Shown here piece after piece: positions 13,917 through 55,181 of a stretch of 55,181 bases of DNA. The position numbers and the translations under genes were made by a program. Source of the stretch: Intoshia linei (lineage: Eukaryota; Animalia; Orthonectida); NCBI GenBank assembly GCA_001642005.1, contig LWCA01000099.1, positions 1 to 55,181 on the forward strand, in the 5' to 3' direction. Below the pieces are notes generated by a model that saw only the letters and a list, made by a program, of their open reading frames with translations, searched no databases and was not told where the DNA came from. How positions within the stretch are numbered: the stretch's first letter is position 1; the number at the start of each line of letters is the position of its first letter.

Positions 13917-16900
13917 ATGCATATCAAGGAGCAATTGTTGGTGAGATTTAAACCAACCAAAGTTTTTTCGGATAATAGCGACAATATAAACAGCCTAGAT
14001 TTTAGTAGAAACGGTGAAACTTTAATCACTTCGTCTAATGACGATTCCATTCAAATATATGATGCTATGCAGGGAATGTATGTGAATTTATTGTATTTAG
14101 TAAATTTTATTTTAAATTTAGAAGAAAACATTCTTTAAACTCTAAAAAATATGGAGTTTCGTTGATTAGATGCACCCATGCTAATAATACGGCTATTCAC
14201 GCATCAACCAAAGTCGATGGTATTTTTTAATAGTATTTGATATTGATTAGTATAAATATCTTAAAATCTAAATTTTACCAAATTATCGAAATAATCCACT
14301 TTGACAGCCTCGAAGGGTCCATGTGGACCCCAGGGATCCACGCTATATAACAGGGATGAACAGCTAAAGTGATATAATATTTCAGGAACTAAGTTAATAT
14401 TATGATGAAGAAAATACCACTAAATTCAGAAGTGAAAATTTACCATCCTTAAGGGAAAAATCCGTTTTTGCCAATCCTGACTAGAAAAAACATCTTAATG
14501 CAATTCTATAAGAAACAATCCAATTATACCAACCGTTAAAGGAAAAAGCATATTTTTTTCAATAATTTTATAGAGATTGTTCCGGAAAAAAACCGGGATA
14601 TTTAATAATTCCCGGGAATTATTAAATATCCCAGGATTTCCAGAAAAAAATTGAGACATACTTGTATTTGATTTATGTTTGTTATTACTATGAAAATATA
14701 ATTATATTATAATATTTAAAATTTACCATTTCAAAACCATCACTAATAAAATTTAATTAAATATATCATGTCAAGCCCTCATGGAAAAATTGTCTTACAC
14801 CGATATTCTTTTCAAAAATCCGATTTTACGAGATCTTATGAAAAAAATCCACTTTATCAAACCACAAATAAAAAATCTAATTTTTCAGCCCTTAATGGAA
14901 AAATATCCTTTTCCAATACTTATGATAAAAACCTTTTATTCTAACCACAAATTACTAACGCTTGATGGATTTATCTTCTTTTTCCAATATTATTTTGAAA
15001 AATATTATGAGTTGTTACGAGCTGGAACGCTATCAATGATATCATCAAAATTGTTAAAATTAAAGGAAACCCTTATGACCGTTCAACCTACATCAACACA
15101 AAATGAACTTTCTCTATGGTACTTTCTCTACTGTTTCTAATTTCGTTACAAAACGTAGAACGCATTTAAAAGACGAATCTATCAATATTATGTTTTGAAA
15201 CACTTTTTCAACAATCTAGATTCGTGTTATTTCATTAATTAAATTTTTTTTTGTTTCTAAAATTTTTAATGTGTCTAGATTGGATAATAAATAACAAGGC
15301 TAAATATATTTTGTATTATTACGCCAACTAGATAAAACGAAATGATATGCATAGCCACACGGTTGTCTATTAATTACACCAAAATTTCATTGATTTATTT
15401 AGTCATAAAAATAAAATTTGATGATGAAACAACAATAAACTAATTTATATAACTTAAACATTTTTTATATAATTATATACTTGTATACAAAAAATAAGAA
15501 ATTTTTAATTTAATTTTCTAATCTTTTCTTAATATTTTCTCTGTATTTGATTTGCGTCTTTTTTTTTGCGTCACGTGGTCTTTTTATTCATAATTTTAGC
15601 GTATAATTTTTTTTGATATTTTTGACCAGGTTCGGTTAAATTAGTTTTACATATCAATTCGTTAGTGAGCAATACAGCGTTATCGAAATCAATGTCGAAA
15701 TTTTGAATATCATATCTATAAATCTCAGAAAAAACTGAGAAAGCTTGCTTTAGTCTTCCTAAGAATCTTTCAACAGGTGATCTTATGGTACATTGTTCGT
15801 CGTGTTCTTTGATTTGCTTTTAGATGTAAATGCCTTGTAGTCGTGTACACTTCCCACAGTCGATGGACAAGAAAATAATGCATAATGGGGCTTGAATGCC
15901 ATGACGCCTACTTCTTTTTTCAAAGCATTAAACTGGTGTTTCCCATCCCACATTCTTTTTTGTCACATTCCGTACCCTGGTTTATATACTAGTATTGTCC
16001 ACTACAAGCCCTATATATGGATATCTTCCAGATAAAACAGTGGGTCGCCTTCTTTCATCCCACCATTTTTGTATTAACATTTCATTTATTGGCTTTCTCA
16101 TTCGATCAATCGCCTTTGCCACTGTACTTAAGTTTTTCTCATTAAAAATTTTAGCAATTATGTATAAATTTTCACCGGTTTTGAGCCAAAATAGGTATAT
16201 AATTAAAGCTGATATGTCACCAATTTTCGGTTTAGAGCCTCTTCTTCTTAGAAGATGTACATAACTTCTAATTTCTTCAAACATTATCGTTATTTCGATT
16301 TTTGAAAAGTTTATACACTGATGAAACGAGGACGCATTATTTAAAAACTTAAATACCAGATCTTCAGGTTTCTCATCAGAATTTAGCAGGTGGTCAAAAT
16401 TATTAATTTTCTCTAACTTCACTTTATTTTTTTCAATTGATTTATTCAAAAAATTTAAATCCATATGTATTTGTAAATTACAGTGTATTATGATAAAAGA
16501 TAGAGTATTATGACGTTTTAATTAATGCATTTCAAATTAGTCAAATTTATTATAACCATATTTTATTACGTCTATTACATAATCTTAAGCAAACAATCAA
16601 TTTTGTAATCAAATGAATAATTTATGGAATACTTTATGGTAATCAACAGACCGCGGTTTCATTGGTGTCATCAATTAATTTTCAAAACATAATTTATTTT
16701 AAGTTTTACATAATCATCAAATTTGATGACTAATTAGTTTGAAATACAATAACATAATATGAAAATTTACTTGATATAACAAAAAATACCAAGAATTGTT
16801 ATTTTTTATTTATTATATATGAATAAAAATTTTTTATTTTTTCCGGGAAACCACAATCACTAAATTTTACCAAATCTAAGGAAATAAAACCACTTCATCC

Positions 16901-22973: not shown

Positions 22974-25900
22974 ATGAACCGGTTTATAGGACTCAACTCT
23001 GATGCCGCAGACGTATGTGTTTATATATTGTGTTCTATTTAAAAGGGTTAACTATGTCTGAGTGTAGACTCAATTTCTATCATTACAAATTAGCAACATT
23101 TTTATTTTTTTATATATGTTTAGGCTAATCAAACGGACACGGCAGAAACAATCTACATTTCATCCTTAGCTCTTCTTAAAGTAGCGATTCTTTGATTATA
23201 AAATATATTTACATGTAAGGGATGGGTGACATGCGAATAATAACAAATTGTACATTTTTAGCAGCATTAGTTTATTTAGAATTACATTTACATAAAATTT
23301 TAAATTTAAATTTAATTTTTTTTACTCATTTTATGTTATATACAAAACCTCACGCAGGACTGTGAAGAGAGGTTAGTTGTAAGATCGAAATTAGGGTCTA
23401 AAATTTTTTGAAAATGGGATGTCTACACATTCTTAAAAAATTAAAATATTAGACCTTCATAATAGTAGGCAAGGCCGTGGAGAGAGGGTAACATGTACCC
23501 GGTCTACTGTTAGGTCTCCGCAGTCCTGACCGCACATATAATTAGCTGTTTAGTTTTATAAATTTAATTTTATTCTAAGTATTATATAGAAATGATAGTT
23601 TCACTTTATGTTTGTGCCTATTAACCTACTCTTCAATCATAATAATATTAATGGATTATTAGGGTTTAGTAAAATGAGGTTTTTATAGTGTTCTATTAAA
23701 ATGGATTTTTTTTTTATGATTTGGATTATATGAATTTTCTATTTTCACTGAACCAGGAATTATGAATTTAAAAAATATTTCAATTGTTTCGTAGTTGTAT
23801 AATTATTTATTTATAATCGAATGCTATTGAATTCAGTCGAGATTCAATCTTGTAACAAATAAAACATCGTATGTTTCCATCCCTTATTAAACTATTGTGA
23901 CGTATATTTAAGATGTTAAAACACGGTAGAGCTGGAGTTCCAATGGAAGTGATGGGTTTAATGGTTGGAGATTGTGTTGACGAGTTTACAATTTATGTCG
24001 CTGATGTTTTTGCTATGCCACAATCTGGAACTGTATATTTCTAATTCCAATTATGTCGACTTATTCATTTAGGGTGTTAGTGTAGAAGCTGTAGATCCCG
24101 TTTTCCAGTCAAATATGTTGGAAATGCTAGCTCAAACTGGACGTGCTGAATGTGTTGTTGGGTGGTATCACAGGTAAATTCTAATATAATATTTTACAAG
24201 ATTTAACTTTTTAGTCACCCTGGATTTGGTTGTTGGTTGTCGGGAGTCGATATAAACACTCAACAAAGCTTTGAGTCGCTTAGTGAAAGGGCAGTAGCCG
24301 TTGTTATTGACCCAATTCAAAGTGTAAAGGGGAAAGTGGTTATTGATGCTTTTAGGTCCATAAACAATACCATGGTTATAACTAGTGCTAATGAACCTCG
24401 CCAAACCACATCAAATATAGGACATTTAACAAAACCTACAATTCAAGTAATTATATATTGACGGGTCAAGTACAAATTGAAAACATCAATTTAATGATTT
24501 TTATCGGTACTGAGTCAGGTACTGACGATGCATCATTACTGTCCATGTGTATTTGAAAATAGAGTCTCAAACAAAAGCAGATACTGGTCATGATTTACTG
24601 ATCGTAACGAAGTATATGTACGATGGGTGATACCGAAAAATATTGACCATACTTATTTTCATTAAAATCTAACACTATTAGTCACTGATCAATGATTATT
24701 TTTCGACAAAGAAAAACTTGCCTTAAAAATGATAAAAACATATATTTTTCAAACATTTGGAACCATTCACGTGAACGGTCAGCCATATCCAAACCATATT
24801 GTTATTTTATTTAAATTGTGCAAAATGAACGTGTCCCATGAATTAAATGTTTTTTTTCAAATCTGAAAAAAATGGCATTTTAAAACTATGTATAAAGCAT
24901 TAATTAACAGTATTAAGCGATTTGATTAGAACAGTGTTTCTTAACTTTTTAAGTGTCATACCCCACTTTTATCCTTACGAAATTTCTACGCCACACCATA
25001 ATTTGTAACAAATATATCCATAGTAGTGTCCTAACAGATTTTTTTATGCATATATATTACTGCGCCACAAAATGGGGTAAAACGTTAAATTAAAATTTAA
25101 TTAATGAATTAATGTGATTTTTGAGTTTGGTGTTTTTTGTAAAGATTTTCTATTTGAAGCACCATTTTTGTAATCTTTAAACGCAGAATCCCTCTAATGA
25201 TTATGTCCAACTTGTTTTTTTTTTTATTAATAGATCACTAACTGCACTGAAGCCACATTCTTCTAAGTATGAAAAAGGGAAAGGTAACATAACTCATGTT
25301 TCTGTCTCATCACAAAGCCATGACATAACTCTTTTATATGTTGAACATTGATTTCATTGACTCATCATTTTGCATTTCCGAGATAACTCATTGATATTGC
25401 ACCAAGATATCACATACATCCGCTAGCATTGGATGCATCGTCCATACTGGAAATTCAATATTTTTTAAATCAGAAAATCTTTCTTTGAAATCAGAAGCTA
25501 ATAATTTCAAATGATCAACTATTATAAGTACATCAGCATCAGTTACGTCACACCTCTTTAACCAATACACCAGTTTTCTATAGTAAGCCGAGTGAATTTG
25601 TTCGCAAAAAATATGAGAATTTATCAAAGTTTAGATTATCTTGATTTCTTGACAAATTTTCTATGCCCCACGTTGGGAATCACTGGATTAGAACATACAA
25701 TCAAAAAAATTTTAGGCACTGATACATGGATTAAACCGAAGTTATTATTCAATGCCAATTAAATTTTTGAAAGAACCATTAGAAGAAACTGTAATTATGG
25801 TTAATAACATTTTATTTATATATAGATGCTACTTAATCTCAGCAAAAAAACTTGGATGGACGGATTGAAATTGGAAAATTATCAAGTTTGTTCTGAAAAA

Positions 25901-26656: not shown

Positions 26657-26744
26657 TCCCGTCACCTGGAGTTGAACCAGGGACCTAGCGGTAACTACTA
26701 TGTAACATCTACAGCCGCTCGCTCTACCACTGAGCTACGACGGG
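26657..26744 (-). tRNA. tRNA-Tyr(GTA) with 16-nt intron
   Basis: CCCGTCG TA GCTC AGTGGTA GAGC G AGCGG CTGTAG[ATGTTACATAGTAGTT]A CCGCT AGGTC CCTGG TTCAACT CCAGG TGACGGG A; C1:G72 and A73; T-run terminator. Confidence 0.95.
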
Positions 26745-27930: not shown

Positions 27931-28160
27931 GATTCATGAATTGATACTGGAAGCAATACTTGTAATTTACAAGTTGTAAATGTAGTCGTTAATTAAAATA
28001 TACTAGTGAATATAATGAAATAAACATTTGATTTCAAAATAATTTGCCAAAATTAGACACAAGAAAAACGAATTGCGTCAAAAAACCTCATATTAAATAT
28101 GGACGTTTAAATTTTTTTATTTTAAAAAGTCGGAATTTTATTTTTATCGAATAAAAAAAG

Positions 28161-28248
28161 TCCCGTCACCTGGAGTTGAACCAGGGACCTAGCGGTAACT
28201 ACTACGTGACACCTACAGCCGCTCGCTCTACCACTGAGCTACGACGGG
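28161..28248 (-). tRNA. tRNA-Tyr(GTA) with 16-nt intron (second copy)
   Basis: Exons identical to the 26657 copy; intron GTGTCACGTAGTAGTT differs at 3 positions. Confidence 0.95.
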
Positions 28249-32607: not shown

Positions 32608-33562
32608 TAAATTTTATATACATATATTCATTCATTTTAATATTAGCATATTCTTTATATGTTATACAGTCGAAGCCTGCCAGTTAGAGCCGAACCTACC
32701 CAGCTTGAGGCCACTAAAATGAAATTTCACAAACGATACATAGTGTTATATAGCTCCTAGCTATCTCTCTAAAGCTCTTGACTTGATATTTTAAATTTAA
32801 CAAAAATAGTTATGATATTCATGAATATAATTTTTTAAAACTCAATCTGGAAAATGAAAATTCTACCCCATTTTACAAAAATTTCTATAATGCCCGTAGA
32901 GAGGTGTCAGTACGGTAGTTTGAAATTCGAATCAAAATATAAAATTAAATTAAAAAAAGGAACTGTATGTGCTAATAGCAATATCTACTACTTTTTTTCC
33001 GTTAATTATAATTTTTTTTAAATTATAATTATATTTTATTATTTGAATCAAAAAAAATTAAAGTATTCTTCATATTTTTAAGTAACAGTTATATCACATC
33101 CCCGATTGTGATATATTAGTTAATTTTAAGTGGAAACTTAAATTACCGCAAGAAAAGTTAAAAAATTTCAAAAGAACAAAGACAAAGAATTAAATAAAAT
33201 TTTAATAATTTGCTCTCTTTGGATGACGCAGATACCCAACATGACAAGATTATTAATTTAATAAGAAATAAGCGGATATTGATCATTACATTAAATATTT
33301 TTTTAAAATATTTTTTTAATACAGAAAAACAAACAGGAAATACCAATCACATCCTTGTTAAAGAGGGTATACTCTATATAACATAATTAGTTTGTAATTG
33401 CACTAAATAAAATATTTCTTAAACATTGTGGATCACTATGAATCATCAACATAGAAACATTATGTAACATATATTGTCTGGTATATAAATAGTTTATAAA
33501 ATAATTAATATACAAATACAAAAATAATCAATTATAAACCAGTTTTGCAACATTGAGTCTCA

Positions 33563-36500
33563 ATGAAGATAAAAATATTTAACAAAAACAGAAAGTCCAG
33601 TGATACAAGTGTTTCGAACAATTATTCTGTAAAATCCATTATCCCAAACTATAAAAATACAGGACGAGGTGAAATATGGATAGTCATTTGTACACTGTTA
33701 ACCACCTTTTCTACAGGGTGTAGTTTGGGATTTCCATCTCCAATTTACCATCAGTTGATTAAAAAAAGACTACTGAACAAATTCAACTCTTCATGGTTTG
33801 TTTCTTTGTTTAGCGTTGGAGCCATATTTGGAGTACTCATTGCCACATCTATATCTAAAAATTTTGGGCGCAAAAAGGCAGTGTTATTTTCAATTTTTTT
33901 ATTGGTTGTATCATGGTTATTGATTTTATCGTCAGACTACATATCGATTCATTGGGCATTTTTGTTGTTATACACATCAAGGCTTATGGCTGGAGCTTCT
34001 GCCGCAACGTGTCTGTTGGTTTTACCAATGTACATAAATGAATCCGTTCGAAAAAATGTCCGTGGACTGTATTGTTCATCTGTTGCCGTCGGTATTAATA
34101 TGGGCATATTTTTTATATATGCTATTGGGAATATTTTACCCTGGCAATTATCCAGTATATTACCTATGGTCACTCTCATTCCAGCCGCCATAATACTCGC
34201 AAAATGCACAGAAAGTCCGTATTGGCTAGTACTTCAACAAAAACAAGATTTGGCCAATAATTCTATTTACTGGTTCCGTGGATTCAACCATTATGACCCT
34301 GAAGAACTCAAAGAAATAACTAAATATGTCGAATTCACATTGAAGGAAGCGTCACCTTCATTTGTTAACAAATTAAAATTGCTAAAAAATAAAAAAATAT
34401 TAAAAATTTTTTTGGATTGCTTGTTTATGCATTGTGCCAATCAATTCAGTATGATTAATGGAATAATCAGCTATTCTGGAAAAATTCTGACAAAAGGTGG
34501 ATACGATAAAACAAATTTTTACCCATTGTTTATTTTGGGTATTTCGCAGCTTGTTTCTACTATCATTAGTGCACTTCTTCTCGATAAATTTGGCCGCAAG
34601 ATCATGATTATGATTAGCACTATGTTTGTCATAATAACTTTGGGAGCAATGGGAGTTTATGATCAACTTTTAGATATTGGTGTACTCGATATTTCAAAAT
34701 CATATATTTTGCTCATTTTAGCGTCTTGCTATTTATTTGCTTTCAATAGCGGATTGCATTCCATCCCATGGGTATTTTAATATATTATCATTTATGCAAT
34801 TATTAAAATGTTTTCATATTCATCTTCAACAAACCATACAGAAATATGAATCATATACAAGTGATATGTCAAACAATTAGTGCAATAAAACCTTTATAGA
34901 AAATACTGCCTATTCCCGTCAAAACTGGTAATAACTAAGAACAGACTTTCTTGTAATTTTTCTCCGTCTAAGGAGAATATACCATCCTATAATCGGTTCC
35001 ATGAGACATACAAAAATTGTCCATTTTTAAATGACATAACTAGTCAATATGATACACATATAGCCACTATCAATTGTAAACCTCAATAAAATTAATTAAT
35101 CAATACGGTGGTTTTTTAAAGTGATACAGCTCGCAACAAACTTTTCATAAAAAATGTAGCGCCCGAAAGTGAACTTTATTTCGAATTTCATTATTAACCC
35201 TTTATAGTACCCTATATATACTATAGTACATGGGTTTTTAACCTTTTTCCACTTGGCACCCTTAATTATAATAAAATTTGGTTTGGGCTCTATAAAAATG
35301 TAATAAACTTAAATTAACAGAAAGTTAAAAATAGTTAAAAGTATGTGTTAAAATAATGTAACCATGATAACAAAATGGCTATCGGCAATACGTATCAAAC
35401 GGTATCTGAATCGGCTAAAAATTTGAATTAGACAAAAATTTTCACATAAAAAACACTGTGATTTGTATGATTTATTAATATTATTTATTTTAGTATCGTT
35501 TAATATTAACCGATTTCACTTTTTTGGATAAATTCTAAAAATAAAAAAAAGCATCCACATGCAAAATGGGTTTTTCTAATAAAAAAGTGGACACCCTAGT
35601 ATACATATTAAAATTAATAAATAGAATTTAAAATTATTTTTGAAACTTTATTTAAGTTTAAAAAATTTAGCTGTAAAAAGATTTTTATTGAAAAATCTGT
35701 CACCCAACCCCCTTTCTTTTATAGGTTTGGGTCCTGGGGTGCAGACACCCCAGGTTCAAAACCCATGCTATAGAACAAATCGTTTGAAAAAATTTTGAAC
35801 TATTTTTAAATGTATAATCGTAACTTATTATATTATACATATTATAATATGCTACCCGATGTTTGTGTGTGTTCAGATTTATTGAAATTTGAAATACTTG
35901 TCTTAGAATTTTATAAAGTCCACATTTCAATTACAGTTTTTTCCAAGAGTGTTTGTAAACTTAATTTAAACTTCCGAAACTCACATCTTACGAGTCAAAA
36001 ACCCCAATTGTTTTTTTTTTGAAAATCAAACAAGTATAGGAATTTAAAAATATATATGCTGATACGGATTTTAAAATCATAAACATGATCATAAATTTAA
36101 ATAAATTATATCTTCAGGGCAAAAACCCCAAATTACCCTTCATTTTTTTAATGACATTTTTAATAAACAGTCCTAGAATTTCAAAAAAATTACAAATTGT
36201 ACAGTTTTATCCTGTTAACACACATAAAGAATTTCAATCCGAATAAGTGATGAATTCACGGTCAAAAAAGCATTATAGTATTCATATATTTTTTTTCCGA
36301 AATGTTATATTAAAACAAAAAATGTAAAATAATTAACGGTCCAAAAATTAAAAAAAAAAATTAATATGATAGATCTAATTCCAGTTAATATAAATACAAA
36401 ATTTCAACCCCAGAAATTTACGCATTCCCGGTGAAAAATAATTTTTAATATATTATCAACCAATATTTTTCAAATATTTCGAATTAAAATAGAAAATGTA

Positions 36501-39276: not shown

Positions 39277-39349
39277 TGCCTCCAATGAGAGTCGAACTCA
39301 CGACCCCTGGTTTACAAGACCAGTGCTCTGACCACTGAGCTATAGAGGC
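39277..39349 (-). tRNA. tRNA-Thr(TGT)
   Basis: GCCTCTA TA GCTC AGTGGTCA GAGC A CTGGT CTTGTAA ACCAG GGGTC GTGAG TTCGACT CTCAT TGGAGGC A, followed by a T-run. Confidence 0.97.
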
Positions 39350-39697: not shown

Positions 39698-40573
39698 TTA
39701 GATAAGTCTTTGTGGTTTTCCCATAGTACTTTTAATGTGAATAGATTTTATATTTTGCCATTTCTTCTTTAACAACGAAACGAGAAAATTGATAGCCATT
39801 GTGATATTAACTAGCAACTCTTCTTCAGTCATTGAAACATTTCCAATTGGAACAGCCAAAGTTAAAACCTAAACGAGTAAATAAATTTCCTTAAAATGTT
39901 TAATTTTTACCTTTTTCATTTGAAATTTTACAGTAGATTTAAGAGCCGAAACCTTATCTACCATAGCATCACTGTGCGCAACTGAAATTGGGAATTTACC
40001 CATTTTATTGAGACTTGGTCCCAATAATTTTGGTATAAATTTAATGAGTTTATCAGAAGCCAAAAAGGCATCATAGGATTTAACTAAAAATACATTTGAT
40101 AAAGGAAAATGCACAAATACCTAATTTCTTAATAACCTTTTTATTACGATTCAACTTTTTTAAATCATCATGTGATCTATGCGGAACGCCCAGTTCATCG
40201 GCTTCATCACAGTGTTGTTGATCTCCAAGTAAACAAACTTTGAAATTTTGTTTGGGAATGTACTTTAATCTAAAACAAAAATGTAAGAAAATTTAATAAA
40301 TTGAGATTACTCTCAATGTATTTAAATTAACGCTCTGGACTAGAGCTCCCCAATTTTGCGGTGAGGGTGAACCGTACCTTATGGATCCGTTAAAACGTTT
40401 GTCCTTTTGTGTGTCATAATTTTTTAAATTAAATTGCAATTCAACAGTTTCCAAAAATTTTCTCTTCCTCGTTTGACTACCTTCCAAAACTCTGTGTATC
40501 GAATCGTTTAAAACGTCAGTGTTGATTTTACTATGTTATTGTTAATTATTTGTAAATTAATATCAAACCTCAT
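39698..40573 (-). CDS. RPL10A: 60S ribosomal protein L10a (uL1), 5 exons
   Basis: [30 protein letters not shown]|[72 protein letters not shown]. Confidence 0.98.
40324..40356 (-). promoter_or_regulatory. Putative uL1/L10a-binding intronic RNA element (L10ARE-like) between alternative 5' splice sites
   Basis: RNA AAAUUG-GGGA-GCUCU-AGUCC-AGAGC-GU-UAAUUU forms a stem/asymmetric loop/stem between donors at 40377 (GTACGG) and 40310 (GTAATC). Confidence 0.65.
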
Positions 40574-41666: not shown

Positions 41667-44618
41667 ATGCCAAATTTACACAGAAGTTATATTCCTATAT
41701 TACCCGCTCAAAGCAAATTATTACAAAAAAGATGGGATGAATTAACATATAAAAAACATATAAATAAGGTTTATATTTAGTATATTATTTTGATTATTAT
41801 ATTGCTTCAGTTAAAGACTATTCGCCCTGTTGTGGATACTAAGGCACCTGACACCTTCATGCATTTGCACCTCAAATTAAAGAAAATACAAGTAATTTTC
41901 GTTATTTTTTGCTAATATAATGTTTATCCTAGATGGAAGCTGAGAGACTGGCCGAAGTAGAACGGGATAATCATTTATTATTGGTTTTTTCGAAATATGT
42001 ATATTTTTACATTTTTAGAACAAAATGACTCAGATTATGCAAACGAAAGGTCGAGTTGATAATGTTAATACTGTTAAAAGCAAAAGGTTTTTTCAAAAAT
42101 TAAAAAAAATCAATAAAATATTATGTTTTACATTGCGTCAGTCATTCAATTTATGGATAAATCCCGAATCCTAGTTGTTGTAAATTGACATGATTTAATA
42201 ACGCCAATGAACATTAGATTTATAACTTTTGATAAATAATTTCCATTTATCTCAATATGATTTTAAAACGCGTCCCGGAATGTATGTTTTATTAAATTTT
42301 TGGGCTGATTCTTATTTAAGCAAAAGGGAAATTGGGTTTTTGACCATGAGGGACTCAAATTCGGAAACTGAAAAATAGATAAAAACACGCTCGGGGAAAA
42401 ACTGTATTAGAAATTGGATTTTATAAATCCAACGACTGTCAATTTTTTCAATAAATGGTTACACACACAAACACATACAGAAATTCATTTTTATATAATT
42501 AAAAGATAATTATAAATTGGTGATTAGAGTTTATGAATTACTACACGTATACGAATTTTTAAATCAAACAATATTTTAGCCTCAACCGAGAAAAAAGGAT
42601 CAGAGATTTTATAAAAATAACTAATGAAAATAAAGAGGTAAATAACATACACTTTAACATAATGTAGAATTATGCATTTTGTATATTATAATATACATTC
42701 ATTTAATACTACAATAACTATGTACAATTGTATAATTATAATTATGATGTTGTGTGAAGAACCTGCCCTATAAACTACGATAAAAGGACAAATTTAATAT
42801 TTATTTTAGAATCCGTAATTTTTAATTTAATTTTTTTTCGAGCAATATATCTTAGAGCGACATAATCATAGATTTTACTAATTAATCATATTATTGATTT
42901 TTTTCACCCTATTTTTAAATACTTTGAAGATAATTTTGGGATCAAAATTTGGTAGGGTTTTTAATGGAAGCTGATTTCACACAATTTTATAGATTTTGAA
43001 GATAATTTTGGTTCCAAGATTTGGTAGGGAATATTTTTAACATTTTAAGGTATCTTCAAAATCTTTAAAAAGTGGGTGAAAAAAATTGTTCCCTTAAAAC
43101 TCCTTTAAAAATTGGGTGAAAAAATTTGTTCACTTTAAAATCTCCAAAATTTTGGTCGAGAAATTATTATAAAAATCTTTAAAAATTGGGTGGAAAAAAT
43201 TGTGCCCTTCAGAAACCCTTCAATATTTTGGTCGAAAAATTGTCATAAAAATCTTTAAAATTGGGTTTAAAAAAATTCTTTAAAAACCCTAATTGTCTTA
43301 TTGTAATTGTAAATTGTCTTCAAATTCTTTAAAAATTGAATGAAAAAATCAATAATATGATAATAGTAAAATCGTAATAGTAATTATTACTAATAACCCT
43401 TTAGGGGATTCCCTGATTGTTGAGATGTTGAGAACCAGTTCTATCTATTGATTGTCTCATTTTTTATTTATTTTTAAGTCTATTTTTTAGAGATTGTTGT
43501 TTATGTCAGAGGGCGGCAACCAGTAGCCCGAGGCCCAAGTTGAAATTTCTAGTTAAAATTAAAATTTATCATGTGTAAATTTTAAAAAACTGGGACCATA
43601 TAATTTTTTGATATAAAAAAATGGTCCACCACATGCAAAAGGTTTCGGACCCCTAGTTTATATTATAGCAAACCATTTTTTAAAAGTAATCTAATTTGTA
43701 ATTAGTGCTTCTCAAATTATTTTATATTGAAACTAATCGAGACGGCGGATAGGGCTAAACTGGGCGACATATTTTTATTATTGAAAACATGTTTGAATGT
43801 TAATGTATATTTTAAAAAATAATCAGAAGCATATAATCTGTCTTTTACCAACCTAACGGTATAATTCTGTTTAATAATAATCCGTAACTGAAAAATCTAC
43901 TGTTGTAGTTTGCATCAATTTGGTTTCAGTTATTATTTTTCAGTCCTTAGTTAGGACGCCTTACATATACAAAACTCTTTGTTTTTCAGTGTTTCTGTGT
44001 ATGTTATCGGTTATTTCAATAACTAAGAGTTTTAAAATTTTATAAAGTCCACATTTCTATTACAGTTTTTTTCCAGGGTGAAAGTAAGATAAATTTCAAC
44101 CTTCGACATTCACATCTTACCTGTCAAAAACCCCAATTTTCCTTTTTTTGAAAATCAAACGAGTTCGAGAATTTAAAAAAATATAGACTCTAATACAGAT
44201 TTTAAAATCATAAATATTATCATAAATTTAAATTTAAAAAATAAATATCTTATAAATGTAATATCTATATAAATATATTTGTATTGTATGCATATAAATT
44301 TTAGATACTTGGCAGATTATTAACACGAAAGCCTTTGTATTCCAGTGAAAAATGGAGAAAAGAATGGATTGAAAACTGTAAAATGATGGAAAATATAGCC
44401 AGATTCCAAAAAGATTGGTGGAAGGTTTACATTTTTATAGTTAGTGTTAATCACTGCGTCTAAAACTTTCATAATCAGAAATTATTAATTAAAGTAAAAC
44501 CATTTTAAATTTAATTTTAAGTCAAATATTAATTATTATTTCATTGTTTAAAGTGCATAAGATGATATTATTATTCTAATTATTAACGTTTTAGAAGGAC
44601 AAGAAAAAGACTACTTAA
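41667..44618 (+). CDS. CFAP97D2: CFAP97D2-like (KIAA1430/Hemingway domain) ciliary/flagellar protein, 7 exons
   Basis: MPNLHRSYIPILP..LLQKRWD..|RPVVDTKAPDTFMHLHLKLKKIQ|MEAERLAEVERDNHLLL|NKMTQIMQTKGRVD..SLNREKR..ITNENKE|ILGRL; absent from the ORF track because the exons are short. Confidence 0.85.
42840..43375. mobile_element. Foldback-like element (second family) in a CFAP97D2 intron
   Basis: Terminus GAGCAATATATCTTAGA..; inverted arms of repeated GATTTTGAAGATAATTTTGG / AAAATCTTTAAAAATTGGG units. Confidence 0.65.
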
Positions 44619-54559: not shown

Positions 54560-55181
54560 ATTTAAAACATACTTATGGCGAACTACCAGTGCCGCATGCG
54601 AGATCCTTCCACCGAGAAATCTCGACGAAATTTTTTTTAAAATAGAGGCTTTAATTTACTAAGTTGAGCATTAAAAAAATTCCTGAATATCAACTCAAGA
54701 GTCTTAGATAAAGTTATATGACATTATAATTCGTTTATAAATTTTTTTAATGGGCTATTTTTCATTTTTGAATTGGCGACGGGTTTGCTAGGTTCAATTC
54801 CAGAGACTACAATCGAACTAAGTTAAATCGTTACATAGATTAAATTTAAGGCACGTGAAAATTATTCACGTTATTCAGTTATTCACGTTGACAGCTTTGG
54901 AGGTCAAACAACACTCGAATAATTGAAAAAATCCAATTTTGAGGACGGTGCAACGTGTATTATATAGATTTGGATTATATGAAAGAATTGCAAGTCGAAA
55001 ACCGTTTCTGAAACAAAAGTCACAGATCAAACCGTTTAAAACCGTAAACCGTAAATTAAATGGTGTAAAGCAAAAGTGGCATGAACAAACCAACGGCAAA
55101 ATGTAGCTTTTACTGATGAAAGTAGATTTTAATTGTTTTCAAAAAGGAGAGTATATGTACGAAGACCCAAAAAAACAAAGT
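54560..55181 (+). pseudogene. Tc1-like transposase pseudogene, truncated by window end
   Basis: RTVQRVLYRFGLYERIASRKPFL, then frameshifted NVAFTDESRF*LFSKRRVYVRR (Tc1 'V.FSDESKF' motif). Confidence 0.8.

Follow-up and report, generated by a model that had tools for sequence, protein, structure and literature searches.

The window – a 55-kb stretch of the Intoshia linei genome, from an assembly of 41.6 Mb in 3520 contigs that is, like the window itself, 26% G+C – carries on its minus strand the gene for ribosomal protein RPL10A (uL1). The gene runs over five exons and is set out in Table 1 together with the features of its second intron. Its four large exons translate cleanly and are colinear with the Pfam family PF00687 (Ribosomal_L1), covering positions 3-35, 40-86, 88-147 and 150-197 of the profile. 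The protein searches took single exons as queries, one at a time, rather than a joined, spliced protein. In the whole assembly this gene is the sole match above the Pfam cut-off and the only cytosolic RPL10A/uL1 copy found. A second match to Ribosomal_L1 (C2289:31369-31653, minus strand) is weak and, at 25.5 bits, falls below the cut-off; it may represent a mitochondrial L1 or some other L1-domain protein. The genome search returned no close relative of the assembly, the search of representative sequences with exon 4 gave identities of at most 72%, and a word search with exon 2 found just three distant proteins, all intron-less.

Table 1. The RPL10A gene of the window and the elements of its second intron (positions in window coordinates).
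Feature	Position	Strand	Remark
RPL10A / uL1 gene	39698-40573	-	ATG to stop; five exons
Intron 1	40568-40531	-	38 nt
Intron 2	40377-40270	-	108 nt; interrupts the Arg codon of GSIR/LK in phase 2
Intron 3	40120-40084	-	37 nt
Intron 4	39910-39869	-	42 nt
Proximal, productive 5′ splice site GUACGG	40372-40377	-	its use keeps exons 2 and 3 in one reading frame
Stem S1	40359-40374	-	CGGU (40374-40371) with ACCG (40362-40359); loop UCACCCUC
ACCC in loop of S1	40365-40368	-	proposed partner of the downstream GGG
UUGGGGA	40347-40353	-	3′ strand of the proposed helix 1, together with the G and A that form the bulge in the uL1 motif
Helix 2 hairpin	40332-40346	-	GCUCU (40346-40342), loop AGUCC, AGAGC (40336-40332)
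3′ tail GUUAAUUU	40324-40331	-	its GUUA matches the G-Y-U that follows helix 2 in the bacterial consensus
Perfect 7-bp hairpin	40300-40317	-	AUUGAGA-GUAA-UCUCAAU; -6.7 kcal/mol
GUAAUC, candidate unproductive 5′ splice site (distal)	40305-40310	-	leaves a 41-nt intron
Premature UAA	40293-40295	-	on retention of intron 2
Premature UGA	40207-40209	-	on use of the candidate distal donor; the exon 3/4 junction follows 86 nt downstream

Intron 2 stands apart from the remainder of the gene. An earlier note on this DNA had singled it out as unusually long and rich in G+C, and so it proved. Whereas the other three introns are 16-24% G+C and the exons 30-32%, intron 2 reaches 55% over its first 49 nt and 45% over its first 67 nt, before falling to 17% in its last 41 nt. 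A segment at 55% G+C, set in a genome of 26% and beside introns of 16-24%, argues for selection. Stretches of 49 nt that reach 55% G+C are found in ten regions of the window, three of which overlap predicted tRNA genes; islands of at least 55% outside tRNA genes lie at 14287-14364, 23465-23536, 32663-32719, 35701-35777, 43488-43553 and 54568-54628. The tRNA calls made by ARAGORN, all on the minus strand, include a tRNA-Thr(UGU) at 39277-39349, some 350 nt downstream of the RPL10A stop, a tRNA-Leu(UAG) at 28160-28248 and, at 26657-26744, an unusual tRNA-like prediction whose anticodon has two bases.

Two 5′ splice sites are to be considered. The productive, proximal site cuts the Arg codon of GSIR/LK between its second and third base. 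The candidate distal site had been proposed in the earlier note, and the reading frames bear out each part of that proposal: its use would leave an intron similar in G+C to the ordinary introns of RPL10A, would add 67 nt that hold no stop in frame, and would shift the reading frame towards a premature UGA. Retention of the whole intron would likewise lead to a premature UAA. In both transcripts the stop comes early, with two exon junctions downstream, and the genome encodes UPF1 (contig C808; zinc-binding domain, E 7.7e-64, in an open frame of 835 aa). By a hand count the distal donor agrees with the consensus at five of nine positions, as does the donor of RPL10A intron 1. Its GU lies inside the loop of the perfect 7-bp hairpin, and this enclosure may favour the retention variant.

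Between the two donors the intron holds a series of short elements – UCACCCUC, CAAAAU, UGGGGAGC and a hairpin. The hairpin that the earlier note had described here (40356-40324) is present and, at -7.4 kcal/mol, is the lowest-energy structure predicted for those nucleotides; its inner stem, GCUCU/AGAGC, recurs in the fold of the whole intron, for which the z-score is -2.65. The first 67 nt of the intron, in contrast, are no more stable than their shuffles (z -0.04), and the signal is therefore one of sequence motif and not of fold energy. Upstream of the hairpin the minimum-energy fold of the whole intron contains the short stem S1, which taken alone is worth -3.0 kcal/mol; beginning at intron position +4, it overlaps the proximal donor. 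We propose that the ACCC in its loop supplies the A of a G-A pair, while on the other side of helix 2 the UUU of the 3′ tail could pair weakly with the GGG. A role as host of a snoRNA or a miRNA was considered and set aside: inspection by eye revealed neither C/D nor H/ACA boxes, and the stems are too short. An Rfam scan of the RPL10A region returned only noise (E above 1), a silence that is uninformative on uL1 sites since Rfam misses the E. coli L1 operator as well.

The position of intron 2 is one that is known from other animals. Takei et al. (2016, PMC4937301) described the L10ARE, a stretch of 39-40 nt between two alternative donors that is conserved in vertebrates and a fly; the intron that contains it interrupts C. 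elegans rpl-1 after the second base of the Arg53 codon, and an intron-retention isoform of human RPL10A is reported as well (PMC4937301). The earlier note's statement that L10a regulates its own splicing through an element between donors agrees with this, and the window intron occupies the same position. So do introns in seven other animal contigs (among them L007, L008, L011, L012, L015 and L016) of our comparison set, which was made up of genomic contigs with RPL10A exons from public assemblies; none of these looks human, and the protein matches P0089, P0098, P0106, P0124, P0133 and P0149 look mammalian. Judged by this comparison, intron 2 and the intron that carries L10ARE in other animals are orthologues. 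It also shows, at the level of sequence, the arrangement that characterizes L10ARE: an element placed between two alternative donors, the downstream one of which – here a candidate – leads to a premature stop.

The seven contigs share a near-invariant core. It opens with CGGACC and, after two bases that vary, continues with CACCCAGGGUCUU; a linker rich in A and U then leads to UGGGGAG-R-C, which a hairpin follows. Across eight animal L10AREs the common order is ACYCA, a gap of 14-18 nt, UGRGNA, a helix that starts with G, and then G or A; the helix was located by a stem finder in seven of the eight and by eye in L012. Among the eight ACYC does not vary beyond its Y, and the pairing of ACYCA with UGRG is supported by covariation: one pair changes from C-G to U-A, and another is A-U, G-U or G-C. 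Paired cells amount to 96% in the proposed register as against at most 64% when the partner is slid. The window presents the same series, with a gap of 12 nt that lies outside the 14-18 nt range. It resembles the L10ARE in possessing ACCC, an A/U-rich linker, UUGGGGAG and then a hairpin, in the same gene and in the same phase 2 intron. It differs in that just the 3′ part is present – AAAAUUGGGGAG and a G-C-closed hairpin, plus the upstream ACCC – while the GGACC..GGUCU stem is not recognisable, the four-pair CGGU..ACCG standing in its place. A further difference concerns spacing: the ACCC of the window, in an intron of 108 nt all told, is 9 nt from the donor, whereas elsewhere ACYC lies 46 to about 420 nt away.

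Searches with models of the element gave a divided answer to the earlier note's proposal that the window be aligned and folded against them. A covariance model of the eight L10ARE cores, built with the window left out (R2), had its best window match at 40344-40359, within the expected intron. That match scores just 7.5 bits, with an E-value of 3.3 when the whole window is searched and of 0.008 when the search is confined to the intron, and covers just the fourteen 3′ positions, and an nhmmer profile of the same eight cores found no match in window or intron. An alternative placement produced by MAFFT, in which the hairpin of the window was aligned with the GGACC/GGUCU stem and its distal donor with UUGGGGAG, was rejected because the covariance model gives it 0.1 bits against 7.5 for the other. 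Since MAFFT leaves the variable hairpins unaligned, a covariance model that included helix 2 could not be built, and a scripted descriptor was used instead.

Several further observations were made on the comparison contigs. Upstream of the core there is in some a second unit of GG(G/A)AG, hairpin and CGGACC (L011:385-410, L008:2833-2855 and L012:2400-2428), which by its sequence could be a second uL1 binding site; the window intron has no room for such a unit. Contig L109, which extends from within RPL10A exon 4 into exon 5, has an L10ARE-like core at 782-836 on its minus strand, in the intron between these exons, which is not the usual one. In L139 (2226-2731) and L140 (1563-2068) RPL10A exon 2 is fused to exon 3, with neither an Arg53 intron nor an L10ARE at that point; the intron in these genes lies further inside exon 3.

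Could the motif be there by chance, in an intron that is merely somewhat longer than its neighbours? For the pattern GGGAGC-N5-30-GCGYT the window contains one match where 0.02 would be expected, and the 41.6-Mb genome contains six; ACCC-N5-20-GGGGAG-N5-30-CGYT has three matches in the genome. The descriptor derived from the animal sequences, with its gap widened to 10-20 nt so as to admit the 12 nt of the window, has one match in the window, at the RPL10A intron 2 site, while 16 of 200 block shuffles give any match at all. It is true that the GGGAGC-type motif is short and was defined after being seen, that the model scores are near noise over the window as a whole, and that, with a median intron of 57 bp in Intoshia linei (PMC6543705), a length of 108 nt is not extreme. 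Yet one of the few sites in the genome falls in the single expected intron, on the sense strand and between two donors. Chance is hard to credit on this evidence, and we regard it as very improbable.

A second line of comparison leads to bacteria, where the L1 site is a stem with an internal bulge whose flanking base pairs are critical for binding; in the mRNA site the bulge contains an A that is unpaired and, possibly, a pair of G with A (Fu et al. 2013, PMC3616713). The E. coli site that the earlier note had quoted proved to be the real rplK leader, and its resemblance to the window is close. The leader reads GGGGAGCCUCUCAGAGGCGUUAUUACCC, that is, GGGGAG-CCUCUCAGAGG-CGUUAUUACCC; the window counterpart is GGGGAGCUCU-AGUCC-AGAGCGUUAAUUU, and the two differ mainly in the loop and in the length of the helix. 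In 60 gammaproteobacterial leaders GGGGAG, CG and ACCC are invariant around a variable hairpin. The window agrees with these leaders at GGGGAGC, at the closing pairs of the hairpin and at CGUU, and GGGGAG-CY..RG-CG-YU is common to the window, the E. coli rplK operator and all 60. What differs is the position of ACCC, which follows the hairpin in the bacterial and archaeal layout; in the window it stands 12 nt upstream and none comes after. A covariance model built from the 60 leaders (R1) finds no match in the window (0.9 bits), since no ACCC, invariant in the leaders, stands 3′ of the hairpin; the comparison with an L1-leader model that the earlier note had proposed was therefore negative.

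The same logic is visible in ribosomal RNA. The L1 stalk of E. coli 23S rRNA, at the junction of helices 76 and 77, reads GGUGG-GA-GGCU..AGCC-G..A-CCACC, and shares with the window the scheme GG-GA-G-C-helix-G..A-CC; the window has neither helix 78 nor the long 3′ strand. The E. coli molecule was the only one compared, the organism's own L1 stalk being absent from the assembly. The main 28S copy (contig C1, L002:1015-3519) stops at the end of its contig, near model position 2254-2290. No contig of the assembly has the conserved 3′ motifs of 28S (the sarcin-ricin loop and GGGAUAACUGGC), so that the assembly seems to lack the 3′ third of the gene. A scan of viral contigs for the L1 stalk of eukaryotes gave a single rRNA-like fragment, in a 90-kb IMG/VR contig (L266:10180-10260, plus strand): about 60 nt there, GUGUAGAAUAAGUGGGAGCUCU..CGUGAAAUACCACUAC, resemble the stalk of eukaryotic 28S, but Rfam identifies no rRNA gene in the surroundings. 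With regard to the bacterial leaders, the likeness of the window is most likely a matter of convergent mimicry of rRNA and not of descent. Regulator family and, as we propose, the logic of negative feedback are the same in the two cases; the leader controls translation from a 5′ UTR, whereas the window element would control splicing from an intron.

We favour the view, with a probability of about 0.55, that intron 2 contains in its first half a compact and diverged L10ARE, an operator through which uL1/L10a would control the splicing of its own transcript; as far as its sequence allows us to judge, the element probably belongs to the L10a feedback system already known. The ACCC, presented in the loop of the short stem that starts at donor position +4, would pair with the GGG of UUGGGGA; the G and A that follow would form a bulge, on which the G-C-closed hairpin would stack. 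Such a fold would resemble the uL1 junction of the rRNA L1 stalk and of bacterial and archaeal operators, with the strands of helix 1 swapped. Once uL1 exceeded the supply of free rRNA it would bind this fold and occlude the productive donor GUACGGU – with ACCC just 9 nt from the donor, surplus uL1 could simply hide it. Splicing would then shift to GUAAUC at 40310, or intron 2 would be retained, and the premature-stop transcript of either kind would be removed by NMD. Fold, binding, splice switch and decay are steps that we infer. Yeast RPL30 offers a precedent: there the protein binds an rRNA-like fold that includes its own 5′ splice site region and blocks splicing. The protein and the motif, a kink-turn, are other than those proposed here, and no alternative donor is involved.

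In favour of a compact L10ARE are the intron position, the series shared with eight sequences, the covariation in these, the descriptor, the rarity of the motif, the G+C content, the single gene copy, UPF1 and the premature stops; to these may be added the placement of the best R2 match by a model that had not seen the window, and the nucleotides held in common with the rplK operator and the 60 leaders. Against it, the proposed helix 1 comprises just three G-C pairs and spans a gap shorter than in any of the eight animals; the profile is silent, both covariance scores are low, the first 67 nt fold no better than shuffles, and the distal donor is weak and enclosed in a hairpin.

This last point bears on a related reading, in which the operator acts by occlusion only: GUAAUC would stay unused, and bound uL1 would lead to retention of intron 2, with its stop at 40295-40293, or to retention of the transcript in the nucleus. 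An element that begins at donor +4 makes simple occlusion sufficient, the GU of the weak distal donor is in a hairpin loop, and a retention isoform is reported for human RPL10A too (PMC4937301). The last 41 nt of the intron nevertheless look like an ordinary intron of this gene, both in length (37-42 nt) and in G+C; GUAAUC is the only GU in intron 2 that is followed by AA; and the known systems do use the downstream donor. We consider occlusion without a switch of donors unlikely, while leaving it a real place among the explanations.

The suggestion made in the earlier note, that a reduced genome keeps the circuit in compact form, stands as regards intron position, donor, frames and UPF1. It stands less well as regards the element, of which only the 3′ third is recognisable. 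It might then be asked whether the structure is a decaying relic of an L10ARE, or serves some other end such as splice-site definition or the binding of a different protein, uL1 feedback being absent from this lineage. The failure of the bacterial model and the unremarkable fold energy would agree with such a history. But a run of 49 nt at 55% G+C is unlikely to last without selection in a genome of 26%, and the nucleotides that have been kept – ACCC, GGGGA, the G-C closing pair and the G that follows – are precisely those that are invariant in known uL1 sites. A relic, or a structure with another role, seems to us quite unlikely. If the feedback circuit has, as our preferred reading suggests, been kept through extreme genome reduction, this argues for its importance.

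That RPL10A is subject to feedback by its own protein in nematodes and vertebrates is known; what is added here is the lead that the element would imitate the junction at which uL1 binds rRNA. The near-identical reading of the window element and the E. coli L1 operator points to a mechanism, namely occlusion of a donor by an rRNA-like fold, and a natural element of about 45 nt with just ACCC, GGGGA and one hairpin indicates which nucleotides matter. One step further, the L10ARE and this minimal version of it might both be strand-permuted forms of the universal uL1 junction, composed of ACCC, GGG-GA and a G-C-closed helix. We offer this tentatively and suspect that it will more probably prove wrong than right; as an inference it is at odds with the statement in PMC4937301 that the L10ARE is unrelated to the L1 stalk, a statement that also tells against our reading of the window. 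Were it true, a single RNA code would serve the assembly of rRNA, translational feedback in bacteria and archaea, and splicing feedback in animals, and the orthonectid element, abutting its donor, would define the minimal operator with a plainly steric mechanism.

A scan of metagenomes for the core pattern brought to light something of a different kind: more than 100 copies of a SINE (in contigs L019-L138; for example L098:1830-1975 on the minus strand and L083:2300-2445 on the plus strand), with a tRNA-like head in which A and B boxes are visible. The L10ARE-like core of L109 described above has no such head. For about 45 nt, between CGGACCAACACUCAGGGUCUU and CUGAGGAGAACGUGCUG, the body of the SINE is nearly identical to the L10ARE, and it has a very close counterpart in the L012 RPL10A intron. 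Relative to ACCCAG/CUGGG, the pairing partners in the SINE have changed together, to ACUCAG/CUGAG, so that CUCAG goes with CUGAG. The function of SINE core domains is described as unknown (PMC4824008), and these sequences hint that one conserved core domain could be a uL1-binding site. The metagenomes in which this tRNA-derived SINE is abundant are of coral type.
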